The notes under the pieces are model-generated. The model saw nothing but the letters and a program-made list of their open reading frames with translations. It had not been told where the DNA came from and did not search any database. From IMG/VR virus record IMGVR_UViG_3300032307_000369, positions 181,551 to 245,550 of that record: DNA of 64,000 nucleotides; one strand, given 5' to 3'. The translations under genes and the position numbers were made by a program. Every line of letters starts with the position of its first letter. The stretch's first letter is position 1. Shown here one piece after another: positions 19,834 through 40,404 of this stretch.

Positions 19834-22800
19834 ATGGCCGAATTTAAACTAGGTAGACTAAGATTCGTATGGAAAGGCACTTGGACTGCCACTACCGCAT
19901 ACGTAAAAGACGATATTGTTCGTCACGGTGGTAAAACATACGTTGCTAAAACAGCGCATACATCAGCATCAAACTTCTATACAGATTCAGATGCAAACAG
20001 ATGGGAACTAATGGCAGATGGTATTCAATGGATTAATACTCCTTGGACTGCTAGCACCACTTATAAAGAAGGTGACTTAGTTCGATATGGCGGAAAAGTT
20101 TATCTATGTATAGACGGTCATACTGCTAATGCTACACAGAACGGCGGCTTTTATACAGATTTAGGTATTAACAAATGGAGTCTATTTGTTGATGGTATCA
20201 CTGCTGTTGGTGATTGGACAGTTAGCACTTACTATAAGTTAGGTGACATTGCCAAATACAATGGTCTTACTTACATTTGTACAGAAGGACACACTTCTTC
20301 ATCTACAACTAGTAGTGGTTTAGAAGCAGACATTGGTAAATGGGATGTCTTTGCTGAAGGTATTAAATATCGAGGTGCTTGGTCAGGCACAACTCGTTAC
20401 ATTCTAAATGACGTAGTTAAATTTGGTGCTAGTTTATATATTTGCGCACTACCACACACAAGTACTAGTGTGTTTGAAGATAACAGATGGTTCTTATTCA
20501 CATCTGGATTTGAATTTGGCGGAGAGTGGACCAATTTAACAGAATATCAAATTGGTGACGTAGTTCGTTATGGTGGTTACTTGTACGTAGCCGTTTCTAG
20601 AAATACTGGACAAGTTCCAACTGGAACTTCTGGTAATTGGACATTGTTGTCCATGGCATATAGTACTAATGGTACTTACAGTAACGTTGCTACATATAAA
20701 CCAGGTGAAGTGGTAAGACACGGTGGTAATACATTCGTAGCCAATCAAGAAATTGGCGTAGGTGAAACACCAGTTAGTGATGTTGCCAAATGGGACTTGC
20801 TAGTTTCAGGTGTTCGTTGGACTGGTGATTGGACTGCGACTCCAACTGAAGTAACTTACAAGATTAATGATCTAGTAAAATATGTTGCTACAACATACGT
20901 TTGCGTAACAGAACATGATCCTACAAACTTAAATCGTCCTGACTTAGATGCACTTGGAACAAATTGGATTCCTTTTGCAGAAGGTGCAGACGTAAACGTT
21001 ATGGTTCGTAGAGGTGATTTAGTCACTCGTAATGCCATACAGAATATTAGATTACCAGTGGGTGATGCTGGACAAATTCTAAAGGTGCAGAATAACGGCC
21101 TTGATTTAACTTGGGGTAACGTTGGTAGTATCACTAACATTTATTATGTTAGTACTGAAGGTCTTGATGGCCCAACACGTGGAACATCTATTGACCAGCC
21201 ATTTAGAACAATCAAGTACGCTTGTGATTATGTAAGAACAGTTGCTCCTGCTGGATTTGATAGCCCAGCAGTTATTAATGTTAAGGCAGGTGTTTACACT
21301 GAAATCTTCCCAATAAGTTTACCAAAATTTACATCCTTGGTAGGTGATGAACTACGTATGAGTATTGTTCAACCAACACCTGAAACAAGTCACTTGGACA
21401 AGTTTAGAATGCGTGATAGTACAACTATCCGTAACTTTACATTCCGTGGGGCAACTGGTGCACCAGGCGGTGGATTTACAGATGTTAATCAGTATGGAAC
21501 AAGACGTCCAACTGGTGCGGCATGGTGCTGTTTAGATCCAGGTACTGGTCCTAATGATGAAAGCGTATGGGTAGGCGCACGTTCACCTTACATTCAAAAC
21601 GTAACAACATTTGGTGATAACTGCGTTGGTCAAAAAATTGACGGTGCATTACACAATGGTGGTAACAAGTCTATTACATCAAACGACTTTACACAAGTTA
21701 TGAGTGATAGTATTGGTGCTTGGTGTACTAACCAAGGTCGTGCAGAACTTGTTTCTGTGTTCACATACTATAGCTACATTGGTTATCTATGTGAAAACGG
21801 CGGTGTTATTCGTGCAACTAACGGTAACAACTCTTATGGTACATTTGGCTCGGTGTCTGAAGGCGTTGACCCAACTGAAATTTCTCGTACTGCCACTGTT
21901 GACAATAGAAGATTAAACGCAATTGTTGATGTTACACAAACAGATGGTGAAAGCGTTTTATACTTAGAATATTTAAATGCTGGTGAAAATTATACCTCAG
22001 CAACTTATGGATTTACTGGTTCAGGTGTAAGTGCAAGTCTTAGTGCGACTGCTGATATTGCCGCAGGCGGTGTAGCAGAAGTTCGAGTATTAGCTGACGG
22101 TGATAGTTATGTTGGCGTACAAAACAACGCACAGTTGGGTGATGCAACTTATATTAGACTAGGCGCATCAGATATCCAAATTACAAATGGATACAACGGA
22201 ATGCGTATCCTTTTAATTGACGGTACTGGTACTGGACAATATGCCTACATTAGTGCTTTTGATGGCGGTAGTAAAGATTTAACAGTCAATAAAGAAACAT
22301 TTACACCGTTAACTGTTACTGCGGTTGCTTCAACTGGTAATCTATTTACAACAGCAGACACTAGCACATTGACATTAAACATGCCAATTAATTTCCAAGG
22401 AACAGTACTTGGAAACGTTGTTGCAGATACAATTTATTATGTTAAAACTATTCCAGGTGGAACAACATTTACAGTCAGTGCTTCTATCAGTGGTGGTGTA
22501 GCTGGTACAACATTTAACCCAGGAACTGCTACTGGCACTATGGTTTTACATGCAGTTGGTTGGGACGTATTTGCTGACAATATTGTTACAAACATTGGCG
22601 GCGCAACTCAAGCTAACCCAGTAGTAATTACAACATCAACACCACACGGATTAAAGTCTACTTGGAACGCTAGAATTAGTGGCGTGACTGGTATGACACA
22701 GTTGAATGGTAACACATACTTTGTTGACGTGTTGTCAAATACAACATTTGCCCTATACACAGATTTTGGATTAACTTCGTCAGTTAACGGAACAGCATAT

Positions 22801-25800
22801 GGCGCATATTCTTCTGGTGGTGCAGTTAACGGAAAACAAAGCATTGCTCCATTCTTGAATACAACGACAAGATATGTAATTGAACCACGACCAGTTTTCT
22901 CAACAGGTTCAGGCGCAAGTGCAACTCCTGTTAGAACATTAGGTATTGATGCTTTTACTATTGTTAACGGCGGTAAAGGTTACACAGACGCACCTACACC
23001 AATCATTGCAGGCCCAGACACTGTATTAGACGCGGTTAATGCAACAGCGACAACTACTATTTCTGGACCAGTTGACACTGTAACTGTTTATTCTAGAGGT
23101 GGTGGCTATACTAGCGCACCTACTTTACAGTTTGTAGGTGGAGGCTTACCAACAGATTATGTTGATTTTGCGGCAGAAGCTGTTGTTACATTAGGTACTG
23201 CAATTTTTGTTCCTGGAACTTTAAGATTTTATGAAGTAACTGTTGCTGGAACACTTGGACTAACAGCGCCAACACACACTAGCGGAACTGCTACTAACGG
23301 AACTGCTACCGTAAGATACTTAGGTAGAAGAGCCAGTGCAACTGCTAACATGACCAATATTATTAAAACATTGGTATTGAATAGTGGCGGTGTTGGATAC
23401 ACTAGCACTCCTAGTGTGCAAGTAAGTGGGGCTAGTGGTTCAGGAGCAATTATTTCTGCAACCATCAGTCAGGTTATTAACCAAATTACACTTGATACAC
23501 CAGGTGCTGGATATAACACTGCTCCTACAGTCACTCTAATAGGCGGAGATCCGTTAGAGTTTGCAACAGCTCAAGCAGTACTAGATGCTACGTTAACTGG
23601 AGTTACTATCGTTGAAGGTGGTAACGGATATGTTCCTGCATCAACAACAGTTATTGTATCTGCTCCACCTGCTGGCGGTACAACTGCTACTGCTGAAGCA
23701 GTTATTGACTTTGGTGCATATATTCCAGGAATTACACCAGGAGCAGTTACCAGCATTAATATTCTTACTGCTGGTAGTGGTTATGCAACATCGCCTGCAA
23801 TAATTATTAATGGTGTTGGTAGCGGAGCTAGTGCTCAAACAATTATTACTGGTGAAATTGATAGAATTGAAGTGATCAACAGAGGTAGAGGATACGAATC
23901 TACTCCAGCAGTTAGTATTACTGGTGGCGGCGGATTTGGTGCAACAGCTACAGCTAGCAGAACAGGCTCAGTAAACACTATTACAATTATTGATGGTGGA
24001 GCTGGATTTACTGGCAATCCTACATTAGAATTTATTGGCGGTGGTCTACCCAACGGAAGTCCAAGTCATGCAACAGCCGTAGTTTCAGCAATTGACTCTG
24101 TAGTCTCAACTGTCACTCTTGTAGACGCTGGTGATAATTATACTTCAAACCCTGCAATTTCTGTAACAGGTGGTGGCGGAACAGGACCAACACTAAGAGC
24201 TAGAATTAATGGTCAGATTAGAACTATCACAGTAACTGATCCAGGTAGTGATTATAGTGCTGTAGTAGCACCAGTCATTGCGTTTAGTGGTGGTCGAGTG
24301 TACAAATCACCAGTTGCTGGTCTAAGATATTATACAAATGCCAGTGCATTAACCGCAATTGGTATTAGTCAGTTGACTCAAACACTTGCTGGTATTGCAA
24401 GAGCAACTGTTCTAGCTAAAAACGTTGTTGCTAACACAAACCCTGTGACCTCATATCAACAAGCAGTGACTCGTACTGCTGGCGGTGTAGGTTATACTCA
24501 GCCAACAAACATTGGTTTTGCAATTGACAGTTGGATGAACGGTGTATATTACACAATTGAAAACGGTCAAAATCATGTCAATGCCGCACAAGTGCTAAGA
24601 CTAAACAGACGTTTTTTAAGAACAGACGCAATGCAGTTCTTGGCAAACAACTATCCAGCTGTTTCAGATAGTACTTGGAGCAGAGATATTGGATTGATAA
24701 TTGATGCAATTGCAAAAGATATTGAAACACGCGGAGTAGTTAACTCTTCAACAGTTGCAATTAAACAGGCTTTCATAGATGCTAGAACTGCTGAACCTTT
24801 GGCAGTATTAGGCGTAATGGATTTCTTAAGAGATAGTATTGTTAGCATTGTTCAAAACATAGTATTAACTCCACAAGTTGATGGAACTACTACTTGGGAA
24901 GGACTATGGGTAGATGCTAAGAGCTATCAAACTAATGATGTGGTGTTCTTTGCAGGCAAGACTTATACTGCACAAAGCAATCATTTCTCTAACACATTGT
25001 TCAGTGTTGATTTGGCAGCTGGTCGCTGGGTTGAAAATATCAATGGTCAACAGACTTTAGATCTTCCATTAGAACCAGGCGCTATTACCGCTACTGAAAA
25101 TTTAGGAAATTACATTAAAGGGATATTACAATATCCACCAGCTAATGCATCTTGGACAGCGGCTGCAACATTGTTGTCAAGTAACCAATCTTATATCAAA
25201 GCAGAAGTAATTGCTTATATAAACAACACATATGAAGATTTTGTATACAATCAATCACTATGTGCTCGTGATATTGGATTTATTTTAGATGCTGTAGCAT
25301 ACGACTTATTAAATGCTCTAATTGCAGAAGCTACTGCTACTGCTAGCACAACTGGTGTTATATCAAAACTTACAGTTGATACTGGCGGTGAAGGATATAG
25401 TGGAGGGGTTGTAATTGCACTTGCAGGTGGTGGCGCTAGCGGAGCACCAACAGTTAATGCAACTGCAACTGCCATTAGAAATCAACTAACTGGTGCAATC
25501 ACTGGCTTTACAATGACTAATAAGGGTAAAGGATACGCTTCTTTACCAACTGTTACAATTACTCCTGATACAGGTAGTGGCGTAGTTGCTAGATGCCGAG
25601 TTGTTGGTGGTAACGTAAGTAAAGTGAATATTATTCATCCAGGTAGTGGCTATACTTCTGGACCGTTCCTAAGACTAGTTGATCCAAATAACAGTGGAGA
25701 TGCGGCATTCCAAGTGCGTGTTGCAAACGGCGTTCTAAAACAGCCTAAATTTACTGGTAGAGGAACAGGATTCTTAACTGCTGCCGTTGACATTAGTGGT

Positions 25801-28800
25801 GACGGATTTGCTGAAATTGCACAAACAGGTAGCTTTATATATGTTAAGAACTTAACAAATATTCCTACTCCAGGTGCAAACATACAGTTTGAAGATAATG
25901 ACACATTCTATAAACTAGTTACAGTTCGTGAAGTTATTGGACCACAAGGAACAATTAATGCTAGAGCAATTTTACTAGCTAACAAAGCGTTCGTACAGGC
26001 AGAAGTTATTAGCTATTTGAATAACTTCACATTTGACAGTGTAAAATGCTCACGAGATATTGGTTATATTATTGATGCTTTAGCTGATGATTCATTAACT
26101 GGATCTAATCAAAGACTATTAGCAGTAAGATGGCAGTATGCTAGAGGATTATATACTACATTTGACCGTCAAAGAATGCAAACTGCGTATGTATTAGAAT
26201 ACTTGCAGACAGAAATTAATCAATTATTCAACTATGCTGATAATGAAATATCTCAAACATTGAATGATTTGATTGAGTGGATTAAGAACGAAGAATATTA
26301 TAAAGATATTAAAGTTCCTTTAAATCCTCCTGCTGGATATGATGCAGAAAACGATGCTGGTTCTGCTGTACTAACTGCTAACCGAGAGTTTATTGCAGGA
26401 AATGCGCTAAGAAGATTTATCAACAATGCCCCTGCTGGCACATATACTTACAACTTAGAAATATGGTTGCAAGAATTTAGACAAGTAGTCGACAGTGTTG
26501 CATATGACTTAATGTACGCTGGAAATCAACAAGTGATCGAACACAGCTCAACTTTCTATAGTGGAGCAAACTTCATACTTGCTGGTTATACTGGTGACAC
26601 AAGTTTAGTAAAAGCAGAATTTGTAAACACGTTAACTTACATTAAGACATTGGCACAAGACATTGTACAGAATAATGTAATAGCTTCATTACAATCTGGA
26701 TATACAGTTAGCGGAACTGTTGCGGTGGTCAACGCATCAACAGGCGCTGTTACTGGTCCTGCACAAGACAGAACTCTAAGTGCTGGTGATACTGGTACCG
26801 CATTCCGTTCAGGCGGATTGTGTGATGACTTTATTTCAATTGTTAACAATAGTCCAACAACTATTGGCACAACTGTTACAGCTACCGGTACTTCCTTTGC
26901 AGGATTTGCTAGTGGCGATGTTGCTAAGAGAACAACGCTTCTAAATGCTAAACCAACATTGCGTACACAAGCAACAACTTGGATGACTGACAACTTTGTT
27001 GATTTTACGTATGATCAAGAAAAATGTTCTAGAGACGTTGGAATTATCGTTCAAGCAATTGCTGATGATATATATGGTGACGTAGCTAAATCTGTTGAAG
27101 CAGGTCAACGATATTATGCAGCCACTGCGGCTTTAGTGATTAGTGCGCAGAAGCCACAAACTATCGCAGCCATTAATTGGATTGGTGAAGTAGTACGCCG
27201 TGTTACAAATAACGTTACATGGGTAAGAACACAGAATCGTGTTTTCCAAGAACGATTCCCAAGTTTAACTGGCATGAGCGAAGCATTACCAGTACTACAA
27301 GAACGTGTAAACATTATTAAACGAATTGTTGAATATGGTGCATTCTTTGATCAAGTTAAACAAATTCTTTTAGATAACAAGTCTTATATTCAAGCTGAAG
27401 TAGTAAGTTTTGTTGACGCAACTTATGAAAACTTAAACTACAGTAGATCACTATGTTCTAGAGATGCAGGTTTAATTGTAGACGCATTGATATATGACGT
27501 ATATGGCGGATTGAGTAGAAGTCGTGAAGCTGGTCTACGTTATTATCAAAGCGCCAGTGCGTTGCTTGCCATTACTGGAGATCAATTGATTCCAACAACT
27601 ACTGCTATTAACTATCTAAGACAGTTAGCACAAGCAGTAATTTTAAATCAAAATCCTTCAGTTCAGTTCCAAGAAGCTGTTCTAAGAACAAGTATCAACA
27701 CAAACACTGGATCAATAGCGTTTGTAGCAGTTACTCCAGGATCTAATTATAGCCAAGGTACAAGTATCACAGTGAATACTGGTGGTAGTGGATCAATTGC
27801 TGGCGAAATTGATGCTGTGGTTGATGTTGCTACTGGTAGTATTATTGAAGCAACAGTTGTTAATGGTGGTTCAGGATTTAATAATGCACCAAGTTTAGCA
27901 ATAACAAAACCTGTTGCAGTGGTAAAAACTTATGCTAATATTTCAGGAACAACGTTGACTGTAAGTGACACTGTTGGAATATTTGTTGGCATGGAAGTTA
28001 CTGGTACAGGATTTACTAGCAATCAACGTGTAGTATCTATTAACAGTAATGGAATTGCAGTTGAACTTAGTGCAACGTCTGACGGTACTCCTGCAGGCAA
28101 TATCACATTCACTGATATTGGTAGTGGAGCAAGCGCAACCGCTATTTTAGGAGTTGCTTATAATACTGCACATGTATCAGAACTACTAGTTGATGAGAAG
28201 ATTGACGAAGCAACTGCGGCACTATTGGCAGTTATTGCTGGCGGTCCAAGTGTATTACCTGCTGGTAGATATGCGGCACGTCTACAAGTTAGTCCAGAGA
28301 TTCCAATTCAAATTAGTCCTCCACATGACACAAACACTGTGGTACGTAGTAAGTACTCACAAGTTCGTTTAACTGGTCACGACTTCTTGAATATTGGTAC
28401 TGGTAACAAGAACGATACCAACTACCCAGGCATTCCATTGAACGCTCCAGATCAAGCTAACGAAGTTGTTGAAGTTGGCGGTGGTCGTGTGTTCTACACC
28501 TCAACTGACCAAGACGGTAACTTTAGAGTTGGTGAACTATTCCGAGTTGAACAGTCAACTGGTATTGCTACATTGAATGCTGATGCGTTTAACTTGAGTG
28601 GTTTGAACGAACTATCACTTGGTGGTGTTACACTAGGCGGTTCAGGCGCTGTTATTCGTGAATTCTCAACAGACAGTACATTCTTTGCTAATAGTGACAA
28701 TATTGTTCCAACACAGAAAGCTATTAAGACTTACATTCAAAGTGCTTTAGGTTCTGGTGGTGGTAACATTGCTGTTAACGCGGTTATTGCTGGTGAGATT

Positions 28801-29979
28801 TTGATTACTGGTGATGAGATCACAACAACAAGCGGTGTACCAGTTAGATTTACTAATGCCCCAGGTCTACAATTTGAAGGCGGAGCAAACAGTACAAGTA
28901 CAACTACTGGTACAATTAGAGTTGGTACTGTATTAACTCCAGGTGGTATTGGTGTAACAGGTAACGTGTTTGTTGGCGGAACTGTTAACACACAAAGTTT
29001 AGTTGCTGCCGCCCTTGATAACACACCAATTGGTTCAAATACTCGTAGTACAGCATTGTTTACTACACTGGGTGCTAACGGTATTGTAACATTAACTGCT
29101 GGTTTGGCAGCGACAGGTAACACTACTGGAACATTGCGTGTTCAAGGTGGCGCTGGTATTACTGGTGATATTTTTGCAGGCGGTAATATTAGTACAACTG
29201 GTAGTTTAGAAGGCGCTAGTTTAGACAATACACCAATTGGTGCAACTGTTCGAAGCTCAGCATTGTTTACTACACTGGCTGCTAACGACAACGTACAGTT
29301 TACTAAAAATACAAACAGCACAAGTACTGGTACAGGAACACTAGTAGTAGTTGGTGGTGCAGGATTTAGTGGTAACATCACAGTTGGACAGCAACTAAGA
29401 CTTTCTGGATCAACAAGCGGTGTTACTGGATTCCAAGCTCCAGCTAGTGCAGGTAGCACAATTTATGTACTACCAGGTGCAGACGGTGCCGCAGGAACTA
29501 GTTTGGTTACTAACGGTAGTGGTGTTTTAAGTTGGGGTCAAGCAGGCGCAACAATTGCTGATGATACAACTACGAACAGCACGTTCTATCCAGCACTTTC
29601 AAACGTAACTACAGGTGGCGTTACAAGTTTAAGAGTGTCAAGTACTAAGTTTACATTTAATCCAAGCAGTGGTTTGCTAACTGTTACAGCACTAACAGAA
29701 AGTTCAAGTATTGCATTGAAACAAAATGTTAACCCAATTACTGATGCATTGGATAATGTGTTAAAACTAGTTGGTGTTACATACGATCGTAAAGATGGTA
29801 CACGTGACAACGAACCAGGATTGATTGCGGAAGATGTTAATAAAGTAATTCCAAACTTGGTAACTAAAGATGCACAAGGAAATCCAGATGGTATTCACTA
29901 TAGTAAGTTAACTGCTTATTTGGTTGAAGCAATTAAAGCACTAAAAGCAGAAATTGACGATTTGAAAAACGGTAAGTAA
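19834..29979 (+). CDS. Giant (3381 aa) multidomain tail-fibre / virion protein with C-terminal S74 intramolecular chaperone
   Basis: N-terminal W....Y..GD.V.YGG..Y repeats (CBM5/12-like); split beta-helix; more than 10 GxGY..xP beta repeats; helical CxRD repeats; TG.L.V.GG.G fibre repeats; C-terminal SSIALK...GLIAEDV...Y.KL...LVEAIK. Confidence 0.85.
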   Translation: MAEFKLGRLRFVWKGTWTATTAYVKDDIVRHGGKTYVAKTAHTSASNFYTDSDANRWELMADGIQWINTPWTASTTYKEGDLVRYGGKVYLCIDGHTANATQNGGFYTDLGINKWSLFVDGITAVGDWTVSTYYKLGDIAKYNGLTYICTEGHTSSSTTSSGLEADIGKWDVFAEGIKYRGAWSGTTRYILNDVVKFGASLYICALPHTSTSVFEDNRWFLFTSGFEFGGEWTNLTEYQIGDVVRYGGYLYVAVSRNTGQVPTGTSGNWTLLSMAYSTNGTYSNVATYKPGEVVRHGGNTFVANQEIGVGETPVSDVAKWDLLVSGVRWTGDWTATPTEVTYKINDLVKYVATTYVCVTEHDPTNLNRPDLDALGTNWIPFAEGADVNVMVRRGDLVTRNAIQNIRLPVGDAGQILKVQNNGLDLTWGNVGSITNIYYVSTEGLDGPTRGTSIDQPFRTIKYACDYVRTVAPAGFDSPAVINVKAGVYTEIFPISLPKFTSLVGDELRMSIVQPTPETSHLDKFRMRDSTTIRNFTFRGATGAPGGGFTDVNQYGTRRPTGAAWCCLDPGTGPNDESVWVGARSPYIQNVTTFGDNCVGQKIDGALHNGGNKSITSNDFTQVMSDSIGAWCTNQGRAELVSVFTYYSYIGYLCENGGVIRATNGNNSYGTFGSVSEGVDPTEISRTATVDNRRLNAIVDVTQTDGESVLYLEYLNAGENYTSATYGFTGSGVSASLSATADIAAGGVAEVRVLADGDSYVGVQNNAQLGDATYIRLGASDIQITNGYNGMRILLIDGTGTGQYAYISAFDGGSKDLTVNKETFTPLTVTAVASTGNLFTTADTSTLTLNMPINFQGTVLGNVVADTIYYVKTIPGGTTFTVSASISGGVAGTTFNPGTATGTMVLHAVGWDVFADNIVTNIGGATQANPVVITTSTPHGLKSTWNARISGVTGMTQLNGNTYFVDVLSNTTFALYTDFGLTSSVNGTAYGAYSSGGAVNGKQSIAPFLNTTTRYVIEPRPVFSTGSGASATPVRTLGIDAFTIVNGGKGYTDAPTPIIAGPDTVLDAVNATATTTISGPVDTVTVYSRGGGYTSAPTLQFVGGGLPTDYVDFAAEAVVTLGTAIFVPGTLRFYEVTVAGTLGLTAPTHTSGTATNGTATVRYLGRRASATANMTNIIKTLVLNSGGVGYTSTPSVQVSGASGSGAIISATISQVINQITLDTPGAGYNTAPTVTLIGGDPLEFATAQAVLDATLTGVTIVEGGNGYVPASTTVIVSAPPAGGTTATAEAVIDFGAYIPGITPGAVTSINILTAGSGYATSPAIIINGVGSGASAQTIITGEIDRIEVINRGRGYESTPAVSITGGGGFGATATASRTGSVNTITIIDGGAGFTGNPTLEFIGGGLPNGSPSHATAVVSAIDSVVSTVTLVDAGDNYTSNPAISVTGGGGTGPTLRARINGQIRTITVTDPGSDYSAVVAPVIAFSGGRVYKSPVAGLRYYTNASALTAIGISQLTQTLAGIARATVLAKNVVANTNPVTSYQQAVTRTAGGVGYTQPTNIGFAIDSWMNGVYYTIENGQNHVNAAQVLRLNRRFLRTDAMQFLANNYPAVSDSTWSRDIGLIIDAIAKDIETRGVVNSSTVAIKQAFIDARTAEPLAVLGVMDFLRDSIVSIVQNIVLTPQVDGTTTWEGLWVDAKSYQTNDVVFFAGKTYTAQSNHFSNTLFSVDLAAGRWVENINGQQTLDLPLEPGAITATENLGNYIKGILQYPPANASWTAAATLLSSNQSYIKAEVIAYINNTYEDFVYNQSLCARDIGFILDAVAYDLLNALIAEATATASTTGVISKLTVDTGGEGYSGGVVIALAGGGASGAPTVNATATAIRNQLTGAITGFTMTNKGKGYASLPTVTITPDTGSGVVARCRVVGGNVSKVNIIHPGSGYTSGPFLRLVDPNNSGDAAFQVRVANGVLKQPKFTGRGTGFLTAAVDISGDGFAEIAQTGSFIYVKNLTNIPTPGANIQFEDNDTFYKLVTVREVIGPQGTINARAILLANKAFVQAEVISYLNNFTFDSVKCSRDIGYIIDALADDSLTGSNQRLLAVRWQYARGLYTTFDRQRMQTAYVLEYLQTEINQLFNYADNEISQTLNDLIEWIKNEEYYKDIKVPLNPPAGYDAENDAGSAVLTANREFIAGNALRRFINNAPAGTYTYNLEIWLQEFRQVVDSVAYDLMYAGNQQVIEHSSTFYSGANFILAGYTGDTSLVKAEFVNTLTYIKTLAQDIVQNNVIASLQSGYTVSGTVAVVNASTGAVTGPAQDRTLSAGDTGTAFRSGGLCDDFISIVNNSPTTIGTTVTATGTSFAGFASGDVAKRTTLLNAKPTLRTQATTWMTDNFVDFTYDQEKCSRDVGIIVQAIADDIYGDVAKSVEAGQRYYAATAALVISAQKPQTIAAINWIGEVVRRVTNNVTWVRTQNRVFQERFPSLTGMSEALPVLQERVNIIKRIVEYGAFFDQVKQILLDNKSYIQAEVVSFVDATYENLNYSRSLCSRDAGLIVDALIYDVYGGLSRSREAGLRYYQSASALLAITGDQLIPTTTAINYLRQLAQAVILNQNPSVQFQEAVLRTSINTNTGSIAFVAVTPGSNYSQGTSITVNTGGSGSIAGEIDAVVDVATGSIIEATVVNGGSGFNNAPSLAITKPVAVVKTYANISGTTLTVSDTVGIFVGMEVTGTGFTSNQRVVSINSNGIAVELSATSDGTPAGNITFTDIGSGASATAILGVAYNTAHVSELLVDEKIDEATAALLAVIAGGPSVLPAGRYAARLQVSPEIPIQISPPHDTNTVVRSKYSQVRLTGHDFLNIGTGNKNDTNYPGIPLNAPDQANEVVEVGGGRVFYTSTDQDGNFRVGELFRVEQSTGIATLNADAFNLSGLNELSLGGVTLGGSGAVIREFSTDSTFFANSDNIVPTQKAIKTYIQSALGSGGGNIAVNAVIAGEILITGDEITTTSGVPVRFTNAPGLQFEGGANSTSTTTGTIRVGTVLTPGGIGVTGNVFVGGTVNTQSLVAAALDNTPIGSNTRSTALFTTLGANGIVTLTAGLAATGNTTGTLRVQGGAGITGDIFAGGNISTTGSLEGASLDNTPIGATVRSSALFTTLAANDNVQFTKNTNSTSTGTGTLVVVGGAGFSGNITVGQQLRLSGSTSGVTGFQAPASAGSTIYVLPGADGAAGTSLVTNGSGVLSWGQAGATIADDTTTNSTFYPALSNVTTGGVTSLRVSSTKFTFNPSSGLLTVTALTESSSIALKQNVNPITDALDNVLKLVGVTYDRKDGTRDNEPGLIAEDVNKVIPNLVTKDAQGNPDGIHYSKLTAYLVEAIKALKAEIDDLKNGK

Positions 29980-29986
29980 TAATACT

Positions 29987-31039
29987 ATGGCGATATTAAA
30001 AAATACTTCTTTTAGAGATTCCAACAGCGTACTCACAATACCTTCTGGAACTACTGCACAACGTCCATTGCGCCCGCCTAACGGCGCAATGAGATTTAAC
30101 ACGTCATTTGGTGTCACAGAGATTTATATGAATAATGGTTGGCACGATGCATCTAACGGTTCTAGACTGATTGATGCTTGGCCAACCAGTATTGATAGCG
30201 GTGGCATGTTTGTTGAACTTTGGGGTGGTGGCGGTGGGGGCGGAAGACCAGGCGGCTGGAGTCAAGGATCAGAAGGAGGAGCTGGCGGATATTCTTGGGG
30301 TTGGATAAACACTGAAGTAGTTCCAACTGGATCAACGCTTATATTGCAAGTAGCTGGCGGTGGCGCAGTTGGAGGTACTTCTAGTGCTTTCCCAGGCGGC
30401 GGAACAGTTATTGGCGGCGGCGATAATAGATATGGATCGGCTGGCGGTGGATATTCTGGTTTATTTCTAACCACGGTCACACAGGCTAATGCAATTTTAA
30501 TCGCAGGCGGTGGTGGTGGTGGCGGCAGTAGTCGAGCAAATACAGGTAATATTGGTGGCGCAGGCGGTGGCATTGAAGGCAGAGATGGGCACAGTCCATA
30601 TGATTCAAAAGAAGAATGGCGTGGTCGTGGCGGCACACAGACATTTGCTGGTGAAGCAAGTGGTCGTGATAGATACGGTATAACTTGTAACAATTCAAGT
30701 GATCAACAAGGCGCACTGCAAGGCGGTCGATGTACAGTTGGCAGTGGCTACGGTGGTGGCGGAGGCGGCGGTTACTGGGGTGGATCAGGAGGCGGCTATT
30801 CAGAATCAAACACCATGGCAGGTGGTGGCGGCGGTAGCGGATTTGTACACCCATCAAGAATTGTAGGGGGCGGCACGCTAGCAGGCGCTTGGAGAACTCC
30901 ACCAAATCCACCTAGCGGTAGTTTAGGATACGGCGGAACAAACAGTAGTGCTGGAAATAACGGATTTGCAAGGATAACTAGAAATGGCGTAGTAACCACA
31001 TACAGTTTTACTGGCAGTAATGTGACGATCACCTTATAA
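29987..31039 (+). CDS. Glycine-rich (polyglycine-II-type) adhesin-like virion protein
   Basis: PSGTTAQRP..GAMRFNT connector followed by many GGGGG runs (ELWGGGGGGG, GGGGGYWGG). Confidence 0.7.
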   Translation: MAILKNTSFRDSNSVLTIPSGTTAQRPLRPPNGAMRFNTSFGVTEIYMNNGWHDASNGSRLIDAWPTSIDSGGMFVELWGGGGGGGRPGGWSQGSEGGAGGYSWGWINTEVVPTGSTLILQVAGGGAVGGTSSAFPGGGTVIGGGDNRYGSAGGGYSGLFLTTVTQANAILIAGGGGGGGSSRANTGNIGGAGGGIEGRDGHSPYDSKEEWRGRGGTQTFAGEASGRDRYGITCNNSSDQQGALQGGRCTVGSGYGGGGGGGYWGGSGGGYSESNTMAGGGGGSGFVHPSRIVGGGTLAGAWRTPPNPPSGSLGYGGTNSSAGNNGFARITRNGVVTTYSFTGSNVTITL

Positions 31040-31052
31040 TGGAATAATAAGA

Positions 31053-32969
31053 ATGGCAATTTTAAGAAATACAACTTTTAGTGAAACTGGTGGATTTTTA
31101 TCCTTACCCGCTGGTACAACAGCCCAGCGTCCTGGACTTTATACTTCAGCTACAATTGTACAGTTAACTACAGTGGGCACTAGTACATGGACGGTTCCAG
31201 CAGGGGTTACTACTATTGAAGTATTATTAGTTGCTGGAGGTGGTGGTGGCGGTTTCCAAGTTGGCGGTGGTGGTGGTGGTGGCGGAGTAGTATACCGTCC
31301 ATTTTATCCAGTAACTCCTGGCGCAAATATCACGTATACTATTGGTGGTGGCGGAACTGGCGCAGCCAATAGTGGTGTCGCTGGCACAAACGGACAAGAT
31401 ACTACGTTTGGTTCTGGCGGCGATCAAGTGGTAGCTAAAGGCGGTGGCGCCGGAGCAAATCATAGTACTAGCGTTGGAGGTTATGACGGGATTGGTCAAT
31501 CAGGCGGGTCAGGTGGTGGCGGCGCTGGAGATAGTTCTAGTAGAAGTCAACGTGGCGGATATCCAGTAGACGGTCAAGGTTACCCAGGCGGAAGAGGTCG
31601 AGGTGGTAATCATCCAGGATTTAGTGGGAATGCTTGGGCAGGCGGTGGTGGTGGTGGCGCTGGTGGCCCAGGCCAAGATTCAAACGTAAATGGTCAAGGT
31701 GGTAATGGTGGTCCAGGCATTACAACAAACATAACATGGAACGGCACTGGCGCACAAACACTAACAAATTACGGCGGTGGCGGTGGTGGATGTAGCGGCC
31801 CAGGTTCATCTGGCCACCGTGCTGGTGGTGGTATTGGTGGTGGCGGTTCTGGTGCTGGAGATGGCGACAGTGGAGCTCCTAAAAACGGTGTTGCTAACAC
31901 AGGTGGCGGTGGTGGTGGCGTTCGCGACACTTCAGGTGCTGCCGGAAATGGCGGAAGTGGTATTATCATAATTCGTTATTTTGCTGATAGACAGCCCTTA
32001 ATGTCTGGATCTATTAGATTAAACACTGACACTGGTAGAGTTGAACAGTTTCAAAGCAATGGTGTTTGGGGTGAAGTTGCTATTCCATTTTTAACAAGAC
32101 AAATTATTACCACTGCATACATGTTAGGTGGTTACAAAGATGCGGCAGCTTGGAATAACGTTAATAGAACTAGTGTGGCTACTGATGTAACTATTAACAT
32201 TGGTGATAACTCTATTGAAAGAAGTTTTAATTACCAAGGTGGTGCGTGTAGCACTAACCTAGCCTACGTTTTTGGTGCAGGTAACGGCCATGCTATTAAC
32301 AGTAACTATGTTATAGCGTTCAACATGCGAACAGAACAAGCGTATAACCCAGGCAGCGGCATGAGCAGAACTATGGCAGGTAGTAGATGGACGTTTGGTA
32401 CAATGTTCAAAGAAACTTATTTGGCATGGAGTGCTGGCGGTGGCGATGCAAGATTAGAAGAATATAACATGACCACTCAAACTCTAGTGGGAACAATTAC
32501 AAGTGTTAGACAAGGTGGAAATACATGGGCCATGAGCCATGAAAATTTTGGATACATTTATTGGGCAAATGATCAAGATAGATTTGATTTTGCCACCCGA
32601 ACATTGCAGTCTGCGGGTATTCGAAATGGCATATCCAACCACGATCAACAAAAATCTATACAAAGTAAATACATGTGGGCATGGGCAGGAAATGAAGGAA
32701 GTTATAACGGCGGAAATAGTCTAAGAAGAACTAACATGCAAACAGACACTACTATGGGAACATATGGTAAACCAGTTGGTAATAGTGGTGAAGAAAATCT
32801 TACTATGGGACAAGACTGGCAATACATGATAGGCATGTATAACGGCGCACAAAATAATATTAGTTGGAAATGGTATTACTACACTGAAACTGGTGCACAA
32901 AACTCAAGCACACTTGAACCAAAAGGTAAGGGCGGAGCGAGTTCTGGTACATGTAGCTGGAGAGATTAA
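31053..32969 (+). CDS. Gly-rich plus beta-propeller-like adhesin
   Basis: WTVPAGVTTIEVLLVAGGGGGG ... GGSGIIIIRY Gly-rich domain, then AYMLGG/AYVFGA-type kelch-like blades; ends CSWRD. Confidence 0.7.
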   Translation: MAILRNTTFSETGGFLSLPAGTTAQRPGLYTSATIVQLTTVGTSTWTVPAGVTTIEVLLVAGGGGGGFQVGGGGGGGGVVYRPFYPVTPGANITYTIGGGGTGAANSGVAGTNGQDTTFGSGGDQVVAKGGGAGANHSTSVGGYDGIGQSGGSGGGGAGDSSSRSQRGGYPVDGQGYPGGRGRGGNHPGFSGNAWAGGGGGGAGGPGQDSNVNGQGGNGGPGITTNITWNGTGAQTLTNYGGGGGGCSGPGSSGHRAGGGIGGGGSGAGDGDSGAPKNGVANTGGGGGGVRDTSGAAGNGGSGIIIIRYFADRQPLMSGSIRLNTDTGRVEQFQSNGVWGEVAIPFLTRQIITTAYMLGGYKDAAAWNNVNRTSVATDVTINIGDNSIERSFNYQGGACSTNLAYVFGAGNGHAINSNYVIAFNMRTEQAYNPGSGMSRTMAGSRWTFGTMFKETYLAWSAGGGDARLEEYNMTTQTLVGTITSVRQGGNTWAMSHENFGYIYWANDQDRFDFATRTLQSAGIRNGISNHDQQKSIQSKYMWAWAGNEGSYNGGNSLRRTNMQTDTTMGTYGKPVGNSGEENLTMGQDWQYMIGMYNGAQNNISWKWYYYTETGAQNSSTLEPKGKGGASSGTCSWRD

Positions 32970-35504: not shown

Positions 35505-37196
35505 ATGGCTCTTATGAAGAAAAAAATTTTTAGCGTTCCACTTAATCCAAAACTTTCTCCAGATCAATATCTAGAATTTTATAACTTTCTAGCGGAGTAT
35601 AAAGATTATATTCGAGATGTTTATTTCACTTCTCGAATTAAACCATTTATGCAAGATGCAATGGGAGACGTGTTTGTCATACAAGAAGATTATCAATATG
35701 CTATTGATGCGGCTTTGTATATTCAAAACACTTTGGGTATTCCTGTTAGTGCAACATTTAACAATATTAGTGTCCCACCAACACAGATTAACCTAGATAC
35801 CTTTATATCTAATTTCAAACCATTGTATGATAAGGGCATAAGAAATGCCACTATCCCACATACGCACTGGATGGCTACTGGTCAGATCAAGGCAGCATTT
35901 CCTGAACTGTATGTAAAAAATACAATTTTAAGAGAAGTGCATACCGCACAAGAAGTTGTTAATCTAGCCAAAGCAGGATTTGATTATGTTAATTTAGATA
36001 GAGATCTGATGAGAGATCGTGATGCTTTATTAAAGATTAAAAAGGCTAAAGAATATATTAAAGAAACAATGGGGAAAGATATTGCGATCAGTCTGCTATC
36101 TAATGAAGGTTGCTTAGGTGGCTGTTCCATGATGGTGGAACATTTTGAGTTCAATAACAATAGAATAGGCGCAAGCCCGCAATACTTTAATGATCCAATC
36201 AGTAGAGTTAGTTGTCCTAAATGGGACGTATTGGATCCAGCAGTGCATCTTAAAACAGCCAACTTTCCTCCTTGGAGAGCTGACTGGGTAGAATTTGTAG
36301 AGGAGTTAGGCATTGACAGTTTTAAAATGCACGGCAGAGAAGCAGTGTCAAGACTCTACGAGACAATGGAAATTATTAGAAGATTTGCTCGAGAAGAAGA
36401 AATTTTAATTGACGGGTTTGAAAAGTATTTAGAAGAAACAAATTTAGTAGATAAGCCAATTAACATATGGCGACAAAAAATTAAGAATTGCAAATTTGAA
36501 TGTTGGGAATGCCAATATTGTGATAAAATTTACGATAAAAAGGCAGCTGACATTAAGTATTCAGAACTTGTACAACACGTAGTTGAGTGTATAGCGGATA
36601 GTGGAATTCCAACAGTTAGTACAAATGTTCCAGGACTTACAAGTATTCGAGTTCAATCATTGTTAAATGCAATTGCATCAGGCGTTGATACGTATTTAGA
36701 AGTTGGATCAGGTGTTGGTGCAACAATGTCTGCGGTGTTAAAAAATAATCCTATACATGCTATTGCAGTTGATAACTGGCAGCAGAATATACAACCATTA
36801 ACTGATAACATAGCACAGCTACCTGAAAATACTGTAGAAAACTTTACTGAAAATATTAAAAAATATAGTGGCGCATCAAGAATTGATGTATATAACGGGG
36901 ATCTTTTTAGTATAGATACTAGTACATTTGAAAAACCAATCAAAATGTTTTTCTATGATGGCCCGCATGATTTAGCCAGCACTAAACGTGCAGTTCAACA
37001 TTATGCCAGTTGTTTAGATAACGAGGCAATTTTAATTTTTGATGATGCAAATTGGGAAGGCGTTGTTGAAGGCGCTAGACAAGGGATCAACGCTGTTGGA
37101 GGTCACGTGACTTATGAAAAATTAATTTTAAATAGTGTTGAAAATCCAAGAGAGTGGTGGAACGGCTTGTATATATTAGTAATGAGGAAAAGATGA
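35505..37196 (+). CDS. Peptidase U32-like Fe-S protein fused to a class I SAM methyltransferase (Methyltransf_24-like)
   Basis: U32-like NEGCLGGC...H, SCPKW and FKMHGRE; Cys cluster CKFECWECQYC; C-terminal YLEVGSGVG, FFYDGPH and IFDDANW. Confidence 0.7.
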   Translation: MALMKKKIFSVPLNPKLSPDQYLEFYNFLAEYKDYIRDVYFTSRIKPFMQDAMGDVFVIQEDYQYAIDAALYIQNTLGIPVSATFNNISVPPTQINLDTFISNFKPLYDKGIRNATIPHTHWMATGQIKAAFPELYVKNTILREVHTAQEVVNLAKAGFDYVNLDRDLMRDRDALLKIKKAKEYIKETMGKDIAISLLSNEGCLGGCSMMVEHFEFNNNRIGASPQYFNDPISRVSCPKWDVLDPAVHLKTANFPPWRADWVEFVEELGIDSFKMHGREAVSRLYETMEIIRRFAREEEILIDGFEKYLEETNLVDKPINIWRQKIKNCKFECWECQYCDKIYDKKAADIKYSELVQHVVECIADSGIPTVSTNVPGLTSIRVQSLLNAIASGVDTYLEVGSGVGATMSAVLKNNPIHAIAVDNWQQNIQPLTDNIAQLPENTVENFTENIKKYSGASRIDVYNGDLFSIDTSTFEKPIKMFFYDGPHDLASTKRAVQHYASCLDNEAILIFDDANWEGVVEGARQGINAVGGHVTYEKLILNSVENPREWWNGLYILVMRKR

Positions 37197-38704
37197 TTAG
37201 TAAGGTAAAAAATATAGTAATTTTTGGCGGAGGTACAAGCGGTTGGCTTACTGCGGCCTACATGGTAAACAATTTAAAAATACCAACTAAGATTACATTA
37301 ATAGAAGATACTTCTCTTGGACCAATTGGTGTTGGAGAAGGTACTCAACCATTGACTGCACAATTTTTACATCAGTGCGGTATTCCACCAAAAATGTGGA
37401 TGAAACCAAGCCAAGCAAGTTTTAAATTTGGTGTTGAATTGGTTGGTTGGAATGACGAGCCATATTTTGTAGATAACGACACTATCAATAATGCAGTTAT
37501 ATCAGAAGACTTTTTTACTAGTGATTACTTTTTAAATAAGGACCCTAAAGAATTTAGAGATTGGCATCCTGCTTATCAATTGGCAAAAGAAAACATTTGT
37601 CCTAAAATTGAAGGAAGTATGGATGTAAATTTTGGTTCAGGAGAGGCTGGATATGGCGCAGTACATTTTAATGCTTACGAAATTATAAAAACAATAAAAG
37701 ATATCATACTTGATAAAATTACATATATTGATACTAAAATTGAAAATATTGAAAAAGACATATATGGAATTACTAAGCTAGTTGATGACAAGAATAACTC
37801 TTACACTGCTGATTTGTTTATAGATTGCAGTGGGTTTAAATCACTGTTACTTGAAAAAACATTAGGATCTCCATTCACTTCATACACAGATTATTTGCCG
37901 TGTGACAAGGCAGTAGTACTTCCAACACAATATACTGATCCTGAAAAAGAATGTTTTCCTTACACTCGTGCAACAACCATGACGTCAGGTTGGAGATTTA
38001 CGATTCCAATTTTTACAAGGGTTGGTAATGGTTACATTTATAGCAGTAAATTTATCAGTAAAGAAGATGCAGAAAAAGAGTTAAGAGAAAGCGTTGGCGA
38101 ATTTGATGCAACTGCAAGACACTTAGATATGAAATGTGGAACACATAAAGAAATTGCTGTTAAAAATGTCTGTGCAGTGGGATTAAGTGCAGGGTTTGTG
38201 GAACCATTGGAAGCAACTGGCATCACTTTTACTACTGCTGTGGTAAGATCAATTACTGACTTATTAAACATGAGTGGAAATGTTTGGAATCAACAAGTAA
38301 AAGACTACATTAACAGAGGATTTCATGAAATGACTACTGAAATTGTAGCATTTGTTTGGGCCCACTACCACTTTGCTACAAGACGAGACACAGATTTTTG
38401 GAAAAATATTGGTGAACAACGCTTAGAAAATTTGCCAGAAGATGTACAGTATGTATTAAGCAATTTTTACCCAATGCCAAGTAAGTATCTTTATTTTAGT
38501 CCTGGCTCAATGTTTAACGCTGTGCAATGGTTTAGTGTTATTCATGCTGGTAAGGGATATGCTAACGTAAAAAATACACTGTCAGAAAAACAAGAACTTT
38601 ACGGAAAATATTTTAAAGAAGTACATGAATCAAGAGTTGGCATGGCAAAGAATACTTTTCCAAATCAATATCAGTATCTAAAGGATTGGTATGCAAAAGT
38701 GTAA
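37193..38704 (+). CDS. Flavin-dependent (tryptophan halogenase family) halogenase
   Basis: GGGTSG FAD motif, GVGEGT, ASFKFG (catalytic Lys position), FIDCSGF, WRFTIP and GFVEPLEATG; start at 37193 via ATGA overlap. Confidence 0.9.
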   Translation: MISKVKNIVIFGGGTSGWLTAAYMVNNLKIPTKITLIEDTSLGPIGVGEGTQPLTAQFLHQCGIPPKMWMKPSQASFKFGVELVGWNDEPYFVDNDTINNAVISEDFFTSDYFLNKDPKEFRDWHPAYQLAKENICPKIEGSMDVNFGSGEAGYGAVHFNAYEIIKTIKDIILDKITYIDTKIENIEKDIYGITKLVDDKNNSYTADLFIDCSGFKSLLLEKTLGSPFTSYTDYLPCDKAVVLPTQYTDPEKECFPYTRATTMTSGWRFTIPIFTRVGNGYIYSSKFISKEDAEKELRESVGEFDATARHLDMKCGTHKEIAVKNVCAVGLSAGFVEPLEATGITFTTAVVRSITDLLNMSGNVWNQQVKDYINRGFHEMTTEIVAFVWAHYHFATRRDTDFWKNIGEQRLENLPEDVQYVLSNFYPMPSKYLYFSPGSMFNAVQWFSVIHAGKGYANVKNTLSEKQELYGKYFKEVHESRVGMAKNTFPNQYQYLKDWYAKV

Positions 38705-39269
38705 ACTTTTTAGAGCTGATCTGTTTTTAGAATCAAATGTTGGTACAGATGAGCAATACAATGATTTACTAAAACAAATTAGATTCGCTCAGAGTATGAA
38801 TAGTAATCCTGCTCCTCACAGTAATGAGAACTGTTGGAGAACTGAAACACAGTATCAAAATATTGGATGGTTACTGCAAGGTTTAAGAAAGTTGTTAGAT
38901 GAATTTATTCTTGAATATAAACATGAATTAGACTATAAGAATTTAGATTACAATAAAATTTCATATTTTTATTGGACAAACATCAATGCACCACATAGTA
39001 AAAATGCTAGACACGCACATGTCAAAAGTCATTTTTCAGCGGTGTACTACTTGCAATCAGAAAATACTGGAGCCCTTAGACTAATTAATCCAGCAAACGG
39101 ACTGTCTGAATGTAACCCAGGCGCTCCGTATATTTCAGACGTTGTTTATCCACCAAAGGATCGAGATTTAGTAATGTGGCCTGCCTGGGTTCCACATGAA
39201 GTTGATCCAAATTATTCAAATAAAGAAAGAATAAACTTAACATTTGATATTACAATAGGTCCAAAATGA
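38691..39269 (+). CDS. Putative 2OG-Fe(II) oxygenase (TIGR02466-like)
   Basis: W.NIN....N..HAH...FSAVYY ... PAWVPHEV.PN....RINLTF. Confidence 0.8.
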   Translation: MQKCKLFRADLFLESNVGTDEQYNDLLKQIRFAQSMNSNPAPHSNENCWRTETQYQNIGWLLQGLRKLLDEFILEYKHELDYKNLDYNKISYFYWTNINAPHSKNARHAHVKSHFSAVYYLQSENTGALRLINPANGLSECNPGAPYISDVVYPPKDRDLVMWPAWVPHEVDPNYSNKERINLTFDITIGPK

Positions 39270-40003: not shown

Positions 40004-40005
40004 TT

Positions 40006-40404
40006 ATGCTACACGAAATCAATGACGGAGAATTCGCAACATATATTGTTGTTGAGAGGAAAGTTAAAGACGAATATACTGCAAGAAAAGTACAAAAAGA
40101 TAGACGTAAATTGCAAATATGGTTAGATGCATTATTAAGTGATCGCCATGTTATTATCTTCTATAAAGACGGTATTGAAGAAAAAATGTTTGTGGGTAGT
40201 AAAAAAGAAATGTTTGGTGAACTACCAACAACTCCTATGAATATTGACATTGTTAATAACAAAGTAAAATTACAAAGCTATTACTGCACTTGTTTTGAAG
40301 TTCCCAATAGAACTCCTGTTGCTGTACATGTTGATTCTGTGACTAAATTTATTGTTAAGCAAGAAGGATTATCAGAACTCAGTTCAAGGATTAGATTTAT
40401 ATGA
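40006..40404 (+). CDS. Hypothetical protein (weak resemblance to phage WYL/Sm-like proteins)
   Basis: IIFYKDG..KM ... HVDSV pattern only; the ORF is coupled to its neighbours. Confidence 0.4.
   Translation: MLHEINDGEFATYIVVERKVKDEYTARKVQKDRRKLQIWLDALLSDRHVIIFYKDGIEEKMFVGSKKEMFGELPTTPMNIDIVNNKVKLQSYYCTCFEVPNRTPVAVHVDSVTKFIVKQEGLSELSSRIRFI

Follow-up and report, generated by a model that had tools for sequence, protein, structure and literature searches.

Does the tail fibre of a phage carry domains related to the light-harvesting phycobiliproteins of cyanobacteria, and might these domains hold a pigment? The question was raised by an earlier note on a stretch of 64,000 nucleotides (here called the window; positions 181,551 to 245,550 of IMG/VR record IMGVR_UViG_3300032307_000369) from an uncultured freshwater jumbo phage. 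From the sequence alone, the note described six helical repeats in a giant fibre gene, four with a Cys-containing CxRD motif and two with Trp instead, and proposed that the virion may display globin-fold, possibly tetrapyrrole-binding domains (for light or pigment sensing, photoprotection or host mimicry), or that the fold has been reused structurally.

Helical units in a giant fibre gene

We first checked whether the repeats are real. The gene is a single uninterrupted ORF encoding 3381 aa, and a pattern search of its translation found four CxRDxG motifs and two Trp variants, one of them divergent, exactly where the note had placed them (Table 1). The observation made in the note was therefore confirmed. 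From the protein's own composition, 0.010 [CW]xRDxG matches were expected and 5 were seen, while for CxRDxG 0.003 were expected and 4 were seen. Only 194 of 20,000 shuffles gave even one match. A profile built from 2184 related units scored each copy at E 1e-16 to 1e-37. The description in the note needed three refinements. The unit is about 105-115 aa, longer than the helix-loop-helix that had been described. The second copy holds only the N-terminal half of a unit and is followed by Ig-like GGxGY repeats. An extra C-terminal half unit lies upstream of the six. No other ORF in the window holds a unit.

Table 1. Features of the giant fibre gene (window coordinates); domain E values of the units were obtained with the unit profile
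Position	Strand	Feature	Residues and site	Evidence
19834..29979	+	Giant tail-fibre gene containing all the units	3381 aa	phrog_9851 tail fiber, E 1e-191; full-length orthologues of 3357-3383 aa at 64-95% identity
19852..20823	+	N-terminal CBM_5_12-like repeats, about 5 copies (approximate bounds)		PF02839, E 2.8e-32, 5 stretches
24292..24453	+	Half unit (profile columns 56-108 only)	aa 1487-1540	Domain E 5e-7
24568..24885	+	Unit 1, Trp in place of Cys, Arg and Asp kept	aa 1579-1684; WSRDIG, W1615, nt 24676	Domain E 1e-17; Trp conserved here in most orthologues, down to about 40% identity; orthologue P0050 has Asp
25147..25359	+	Unit 2, N-terminal half only (profile columns 4-57)	aa 1772-1842; LCARDIGF, C1810, nt 25261	Domain E 1.5e-22
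25945..26256	+	Unit 3	aa 2038-2141; KCSRDIGY, C2072, nt 26047	Domain E 3e-24; weak direct PF00502 hit, E 0.062
26344..26700	+	Unit 4, degenerate site	aa 2171-2289; WLQEF, W2211, nt 26464	Domain E 1e-16; W, F, Y or C at this position in orthologues
26911..27240	+	Unit 5	aa 2360-2469; KCSRDVGI, C2398, nt 27025	Domain E 2e-35
27343..27675	+	Unit 6	aa 2504-2614; LCSRDAGL, C2541, nt 27454	Domain E 1e-37
29704..29862	+	C-terminal intramolecular chaperone domain (Peptidase_S74), typical of trimeric phage fibres	aa 3291-3343	PF13884, E 5e-11

The assignment as a tail fibre was supported by the C-terminal chaperone domain, by matches to tail-fibre PHROG families and by the neighbouring genes, which are baseplate wedge, sheath and tube genes. 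The phage is a jumbo myovirus (relatives of about 350 kb). Its capsid protein is about 70% identical to those of jumbo phages of Proteobacteria, so that a cyanobacterial host cannot be assumed. A nucleotide search (megablast) of the region against phage isolates found nothing.

The units belong to a large, phage-specific and apparently undescribed family, which the note had not recognised. The family has 1242 cluster representatives and up to 36 units per protein. It is nearly absent from 185,579 cellular genomes, where a degenerate DNA pattern gave 36 loci, of which only 3 are real units. Among 50,697 cultured phages it occurs only in tail-fibre and baseplate proteins of cyanophages (251 of 251 and 353 of 353 records), whose hosts are rich in bilins. 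A search for small single-domain relatives found only 3 fragments, and a scan of viral contigs for close relatives of P0121 (our designation) found only 2. Full-text literature searches found no description of the family.

A predicted phycobiliprotein-like fold

To find out what the units look like, we built two template-free AlphaFold2 models from alignments that contain only phage units. Unit 6 gave a model of five helices with pLDDT 84.9 and pTM 0.77, and unit 3 a model with pLDDT 77.6. A Foldseek search against 350,542 PDB chains returned almost only phycobiliproteins, the ApcE bilin domain and smURFP, plus the DosC globin (TMq 0.5-0.64, probability about 1.0). The top matches of unit 6 were phycobiliproteins at TMq 0.60-0.64, and all top 50 matches of unit 3 were phycobiliproteins or the APC-derived smURFP. 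A fold other than globin-like had been set beforehand as the result that would refute the proposal, and the predictions did not show it.

Sequence comparison pointed in the same direction. A unit profile searched against PDB sequences gave 11 of 12 hits to phycocyanin alpha, aligned at KCxRDxGY and helix B. Alignment of the units with phycocyanin alpha plus beta (hhalign) gave Prob 86-90% and P 2e-6 to 5e-6 over 93-102 columns, with the Cys on Cys84, the bilin-attachment site. The window's own five units alone gave P 1.8e-5, while reversed controls gave P 0.04-0.3. PF00502 was the only Pfam family hit by more than one of 75 units (7 units, best E 3e-4, below the gathering score). The window protein itself does not reach the threshold of this family (22.2 bits): the whole protein was not listed at E<=0.1, and its best single unit scored 13.7 bits. 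The homologues P0006 and P0015 reached 35-38 bits, but only by summing weak repeats. A phmmer search of the region against PDB sequences gave only a chance hit, and the ESM Atlas gave no usable lead (scores <=0.69).

These data left room for the possibility that the units are not homologous to phycobiliproteins, and that a generic four- or five-helix domain acquired a CxRD-like motif by convergence, to which the structure prediction was then drawn. Masking ten columns around CxRD collapsed the hhalign signal to P 0.058, so that the sequence homology rests almost wholly on the motif. Individual Foldseek E-values are only 0.03-0.4, and AlphaFold may have been steered by the motif. However, both models returned phycobiliproteins almost exclusively, the masked alignment still chose the same register, and the F-x-Y-D...KC stretch before the Cys also matches phycocyanin alpha. 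Motif, helix and fold coincide. We consider convergence unlikely.

A co-varying site and the inference of bilin binding

We next asked whether the motif is part of a functional site. Family-wide, the Cys is conserved in 93%, the Arg in 95% and the Asp in 97% of units. In 2324 Cys units (of 2488), Arg49 is kept in 99%, Asp50 in 100%, Tyr42 in 91%, Tyr76 in 92% and Thr94 in 93%, while in the 164 Cys-less units the figures are 49, 60, 36, 40 and 24%. In contrast, Asn21, Asp61 and Gly65, which keep the fold, stay conserved in both groups. A divergence-matched control gave the same result. The lost Cys is replaced by W, F or Y in 114 of 164 cases.

Further evidence was sought in the surroundings of the units. 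As the note had stated for bilin-synthesis and lyase genes, no HO, FDBR or lyase gene was found in the window, nor were V4R and Fe-S genes. None of HO, FDBR or lyase lay within 120 viral unit loci, none of 120 viral HO loci held a unit, and no contig was shared among those compared; since the sample is partial and most contigs are fragments, we regard this as uninformative rather than negative. Only 20 phage isolates encode HO, against 251-353 with units. On one contig a 5-aminolevulinate synthase gene lies next to a 30-unit gene, and such a gene adjoins a unit gene on a few contigs, but only 2 of 80 alaS loci hold units, so that adjacency is not a rule. A cpeT gene lies about 1 kb from the fibre gene of S-RSM4. 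However, S-CREM2, which carries an S-type lyase, has no unit in its structural module, and we rejected phage lyases as general partners.

Our preferred interpretation, held with moderate confidence, is that the repeats are tandem copies of a phage-specific, all-helical domain, a trimmed phycobiliprotein-type globin strung like beads inside the fibre. It would keep helices corresponding to A/B, E, F and G and lack helix H and the N-terminal X-Y hairpin that phycobiliproteins use for alpha-beta pairing. What the analysis shows is the predicted fold, the CxRD motif at the start of the helix that aligns with helix E and Cys84, and the fact that Cys, Arg, Asp and five other residues (Tyr42, Lys46, Tyr76, Gln90 and Thr94) from the pre-E loop and helices F and G form one evolutionary unit that is kept or lost together. 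That this unit is a ligand pocket, and that it binds a bilin, is inferred. In Cys-bearing units it would most likely take up a linear tetrapyrrole (bilin) in the host cytoplasm during fibre assembly, joined by a thioether to the Cys and held by the Asp and Arg, without a lyase, as reported for BBAGs (PMC10151467). The ApcE domain and smURFP also attach a bilin in this way. Units with Trp, Phe or Tyr in place of Cys (here units 1 and 4) would be pocket-filled, purely structural beads. Light-gated adsorption or photoprotection as the role of such a pigment are guesses.

The interpretation given in the note was thus partly supported: the predicted fold, the alignment with Cys84 and helix B, the tail-fibre assignment and the lack of bilin genes in the window held up, while tetrapyrrole binding is supported only indirectly, by the co-varying Cys-centred site. 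It is weakened for this particular lineage by the occurrence of closely related DNA in subsurface metagenomes and by Cys loss in orthologues, P0050 and P0095 keeping only 3 of 8 and 1 of 6 Cys. Host mimicry is unlikely, because fibres meet the cell surface, not phycobilisomes.

The same observations, with the lack of bilin genes, suit a purely structural reuse, in which the trimmed globin is a rigid bead that lengthens the fibre, and CxRD and its partners serve packing, helix capping or inter-bead contacts. Half units and degenerate units are tolerated, and units persist in orthologues that have lost most Cys. No pigmentation of cyanophage virions came up in the literature searched, and none is known to us. 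This reading is possible, though we find it less likely. It does not explain why Arg and Asp are 99-100% conserved only when Cys is present, why eight residues on four different segments decay together while the fold-keeping residues stay, or why the motif is the same as the bilin site, on the same helix, of the same fold.

Alternatively, the Cys-centred pocket may be functional but bind something else (heme or a porphyrin, a metal, or a host-surface moiety), or the Cys may act in redox chemistry or in inter-chain cross-linking of the fibre. The co-varying site indicates function but not ligand identity, three conserved Asp (D50, D56, D61) lie on the motif helix, two conserved Tyr are present, and the 5-aminolevulinate synthase neighbour points to tetrapyrroles in general. 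We consider this doubtful, since no unit column has His above 9%, leaving no conserved His for heme ligation as in heme globins, and there is one conserved Cys per unit without a partner (other Cys average 0.13 per unit). Furthermore, the Cys-Arg-Asp triad is the bilin triad of phycobiliproteins and BBAG-1/3 (PMC10151467).

A wider and more tentative reading, which we consider unlikely on present evidence but cannot exclude, is that tail fibres and baseplate proteins of many aquatic phages are biliproteins, each Cys-bearing unit carrying a covalently bound bilin, which would make the virion itself light-absorbing. This could explain the light-dependent adsorption of cyanomyoviruses such as S-PM2, P-HM1 and P-HM2, all of which carry units, and for which light-sensitive tail fibres and/or host receptors have been suggested (PMC6628666). 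It would also give an acceptor for the bilins and tetrapyrrole precursors made by phage hemO, pebS, pcyA/pcyX and alaS genes, whose benefit to the phage is still unclear. Both are stated open questions (PMC6628666, PMC2984593, PMC11480375). If the units bind bilins, it becomes directly testable why some cyanophages adsorb only in the light, why phages of Prochlorococcus and of heterotrophs carry bilin and 5-aminolevulinate synthesis genes, and where phycobiliproteins came from. If they do not, this is still a clear case of a pigment-protein fold, as predicted, recruited as a fibre building block, and it provides a new, easily recognised marker domain for aquatic myovirus fibres.

Comparison with known systems

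Phycobiliprotein-type globins are known as cyanobacterial and algal antenna proteins and, since 2023, as BBAGs of heterotrophs; here the same fold, as predicted, and the same attachment motif appear as a huge phage-only family built into virions. With phycobiliproteins (PF00502; phycocyanin, phycoerythrin, allophycocyanin) the units share the predicted globin-type fold and the KCxRDxGY motif, and the preceding helix and F-x-Y-D loop align with helix B and residues 74-78. They differ in being about 105-115 aa rather than 160-180 aa and in aligning only to residues about 41-146. The equivalent of Arg93, conserved for alpha-beta monomer formation, is Asp in 79% of units. They occur as tandem copies inside a virion protein, not as alpha-beta discs in a phycobilisome.

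BBAGs, the bilin biosynthesis-associated globins of non-photosynthetic bacteria (Rockwell et al. 2023, PMC10151467), are phycobiliprotein paralogues found outside light harvesting, as the units are inferred to be. BBAG-1/3 carry CXRD, as do the units, and attach bilins by themselves; their biological role is also unknown. BBAGs are single-domain cellular proteins clustered with HO, FDBR (pre-PcyA), V4R and Fe-S genes. The units are phage-specific, tandem and structural, and are not clustered with those genes here.

The ApcE bilin-binding domain and smURFP both appear among the structural matches (smURFP with TMq 0.64 and TMt 0.68 to unit 3), and indicate that a small phycobiliprotein-type domain can bind a bilin covalently without a lyase. 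They are cyanobacterial or engineered proteins, and for the phage units self-attachment is only inferred. Finally, the units share their architectural role with the repeated bead domains of giant phage fibres (Ig-like, CBM_5_12, collagen-like), many small domains being strung along a fibre that ends in a Peptidase_S74 chaperone. Those domains are beta-rich and have no conserved reactive Cys site, while the present one is predicted to be an all-helical globin with a co-varying, putative pocket.

The fibre gene and its surroundings

The window holds one uninterrupted ORF that encodes a protein of 3381 aa. The earlier note had described six repeats around a [C/W]xRD motif in this protein, four with Cys and two with Trp, and a search of the translation found each of them where the note had placed it (see table). 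The observation was thus confirmed. From the protein's own composition, 0.010 [CW]xRDxG matches are expected, while five are seen, and only 194 of 20,000 shuffled sequences gave even one match. The motifs sit in a repeated unit of about 105-115 aa. A profile built from relatives scored each of the six copies at E 1e-16 to 1e-37. Copy 2 is only the N-terminal half of a unit, and a further half unit, in this case C-terminal, was also found. No other ORF in the window contains a unit.

The protein begins with about five CBM_5_12 repeats and ends with a Peptidase_S74 intramolecular chaperone. Its best PHROG match is a tail-fibre family (E 1e-191). Ig-like GGxGY repeats interrupt the unit array after the truncated unit 2, and a CBM_5_12-like segment, seen by eye, lies between units 1 and 2. 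The array looks like a mosaic built by domain insertion.

The gene lies in a myovirus structural module with portal, prohead protease, major capsid, baseplate wedge, sheath and tube genes. This module also contains a cluster of modifying enzymes, which may modify virion proteins. A similar 2OG-oxygenase/methyltransferase cluster follows the fibre gene in a 356-kb relative. The capsid protein is about 70% identical to those of jumbo phages Phosso, Vibrio 2.275.O and PA5oct, and orthologues of the fibre gene lie on syntenic contigs of 356 kb (CACVDF010000001.1) and 364 kb (IMGVR_UViG_3300021963_000021). The window's DNA is found in freshwater, lake and subsurface metagenomes, and a cyanobacterial host cannot be assumed.

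Coordinates of the features (window positions in nt unless another record is named)
Feature	Position	Strand	Remarks
Tail-fibre ORF	19834-29979	+	3381 aa
Motif of unit 1	nt 24676		W1615
Motif of unit 2	nt 25261		C1810; N-terminal half of a unit only
Motif of unit 3	nt 26047		C2072
Motif of unit 4	nt 26464		W2211, divergent
Motif of unit 5	nt 27025		C2398
Motif of unit 6	nt 27454		C2541
Additional half unit	aa 1487-1540		C-terminal half
Ig-like GGxGY repeats and CBM_5_12-like segment	25360-25940 and 22900-24200 (approximate)		CBM_5_12-like segment at aa about 1700-1760
Region of raised G+C	29987-32969		G+C 0.51, against about 0.39 elsewhere
Gly-rich protein	29987-31039		Long poly-Gly runs; directly after the fibre gene
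Cluster of modifying enzymes	35505-40985		Methyltransferase-domain protein, tryptophan halogenase-like FAD enzyme and two 2OG-Fe(II) oxygenases
TnsA-like endonuclease, NUDIX hydrolase and deoxynucleotide monophosphate kinase	61706-62146, 50402-50851, 54389-55051		Interspersed among the tail genes
5-Aminolevulinate synthase, viral locus L406	L406:712-1941	-	TIGR01821, E 3e-170
P0121, unit-bearing protein of L406	L406:2465-16864		4799 aa, about 30 CxRD units
S-RSM4 locus with cpeT-like gene and fibre gene	FM207411.1 160000-179000		cpeT-like bilin lyase gene and 4482-aa 'short tail fibre' gene

A family of repeated units in phage proteins

A profile of the window's units found 1242 cluster representatives among 1.84 billion proteins. 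Of these, 470 scored E<=1e-30, and some proteins hold up to 36 units. In 256 proteins that were retrieved we found 3019 units, of which 2488 were full length. Their consensus is A..LL.aNK.FIQ.EvIAYI...YpgF.YD..KCxRDvGyIvDAva.DLyGGN..S..AG..YY......(Q/E)...T..Ai.Yl......N, with column frequencies of 93% for Cys, 95% for Arg, 97% for Asp and 99% for a second Asp. A degenerate DNA pattern for the motif behaved very differently in two collections. In IMG/VR it matched at least 120 loci, and all 120 loci compared are real, holding 662 units, while in the genomes of 185,579 bacterial and archaeal species it found only 3 real loci, all on MAG contigs. A search for stand-alone single-domain relatives found none.

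Among 50,697 cultured phage records, every record matching a unit-rich query is a cyanophage (251 of 251 records with one query and 353 of 353 with another). The matches fall in genes annotated as short tail fibre, tail fibre or gp7 baseplate wedge. S-PM2 p091 has at least 5 KCxRDxGY units, S-RSM4 gp214 has 6 KCxRD units (5 of them KCxRDxGY/H) among 8 unit matches, and P-HM2 gp7 has 2 units. BFVD holds the same predicted fold in these cyanophage proteins and in uncultured freshwater phages, all of them uncharacterised. Full-text literature searches found no description of these repeats.

Predicted fold and sequence relationship to phycobiliproteins

To compare the units with known folds, we ran AlphaFold2 without templates on alignments that contain only phage units. 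Unit 6 gave a pLDDT of 84.9 and a pTM of 0.77, and unit 3 gave a pLDDT of 77.6. Both models are five- or six-helix bundles with the Cys at the start of a confidently predicted helix. Foldseek against the PDB returned nearly only phycoerythrin, phycocyanin and allophycocyanin chains, the ApcE bilin domain and smURFP, plus the DosC globin. TMq was 0.5-0.64 and the probability about 1.0, but E-values were only 0.03-0.4.

In sequence searches, a unit profile run against PDB sequences gave 11 of 12 hits to phycocyanin alpha, in an alignment that covers helix B, the F-x-Y-D loop and KCxRDxGY. PF00502 is the only Pfam family matched by more than one of 75 diverse units. It passes its threshold on homologues by summed weak hits, but does not pass on the window protein. 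We also took phycocyanin alpha and beta sequences from metagenome loci and aligned the units to them with hhalign. This gave Prob 86-90% and P 2e-6 to 5e-6 over 93-102 columns, unit 4-103 against phycobiliprotein residues about 41-146. The window's five units alone gave P 1.8e-5, while reversed controls gave P 0.04-0.3. However, masking ten columns around CxRD dropped the score to P 0.058, although the register stayed the same. The sequence case therefore rests on the motif, and the fold case rests on prediction. The presence of the same motif on the same helix of the same predicted fold makes common descent the simplest reading, but this is not proven.

A co-varying site and its putative ligand

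Further evidence on the role of the Cys was obtained by comparing full-length units with and without this residue (see table). Asn21, Phe24, Asp61 and Gly65 stay as conserved or become more so in the Cys-less units, and the contrast holds against 486 Cys units that are even more diverged elsewhere. Cys is replaced by Trp, Phe or Tyr in 114 of 164 cases. Residues from the pre-E loop and from helices E, F and G therefore behave as one functional site centred on the Cys. This is what a ligand pocket looks like, and the bulky replacements look like pocket filling. The covariation does not show which ligand this would be, but no conserved His exists for heme.

Conservation of site residues in units with and without the Cys
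Position	2324 Cys units	164 Cys-less units
Arg49	99%	49%
Asp50	100%	60%
Tyr42	91%	36%
Tyr76	92%	40%
Thr94	93%	24%
Gln90	59%	15%
Lys46	55%	10%

The genomic context spoke both for and against a bilin. Among isolates the units occur only in cyanophages. In S-RSM4, a cpeT-like bilin lyase gene lies about 1 kb upstream of the 'short tail fibre' gene, which carries at least 7 units, and five tRNA genes and one small ORF lie between them. A bona fide 5-aminolevulinate synthase gene is divergently adjacent to that of the 30-unit protein P0121. Two further alaS loci have a 2262-aa unit-bearing ORF about 2 kb away, and one 108-kb IMG/VR contig holds both genes. This adjacency is not general, however, since only 2 of 80 alaS loci hold units and the other 78 show no unit within 10 kb. 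In contrast, and in agreement with the earlier note, which had found no lyase or bilin-synthesis gene, the window has no HO, FDBR or lyase. In the samples compared, in which most contigs are fragments, 120 viral HO loci hold no units and 120 unit loci hold no HO, and only 20 phage isolates encode HO. S-CREM2, which has an S-type lyase, has no units in its structural module.

In the jumbo lineage of the window phage, the site is eroding. Unit 1 has Trp in most orthologues and Asp in P0050, the orthologue from the 356-kb relative. P0050 keeps 3 of 8 Cys and P0095, another orthologue, keeps 1 of 6, most having been replaced by Phe or other residues while the units were kept. The site thus appears dispensable in parts of this lineage.

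Taken together, these data give good support to the fold, as predicted, and to the family, while a functional Cys-centred pocket is supported by covariation. Binding of a bilin is inferred. We consider bilin attachment the most likely chemistry, but it is unproven: for the family as a whole it is at best about as likely as not, and for the phage of this window it is less likely. The main rival is a purely structural reuse of the fold. The interpretation of the earlier note, which had proposed globin-fold, possibly tetrapyrrole-binding domains or else a structural reuse of the fold, is partly supported, on the side of the fold. If the units bind bilins, two questions in the literature would become testable. 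One is the light-dependent adsorption of S-PM2, P-HM1 and P-HM2, which is attributed to light-sensitive receptors and/or tail fibres (PMC6628666, PMC2984593). The other is the benefit to phages of bilin and alaS genes, which is unclear (PMC2984593, PMC11480375).

Compared with phycobiliproteins, the unit lacks the X-Y hairpin and helix H, and it has Asp where phycobiliproteins have Arg93. These differences fit a domain that does not form alpha-beta monomers. As to the motif, CXRD is the bilin triad of phycobiliproteins and of BBAG-1/3, and BBAGs self-attach bilins (PMC10151467).
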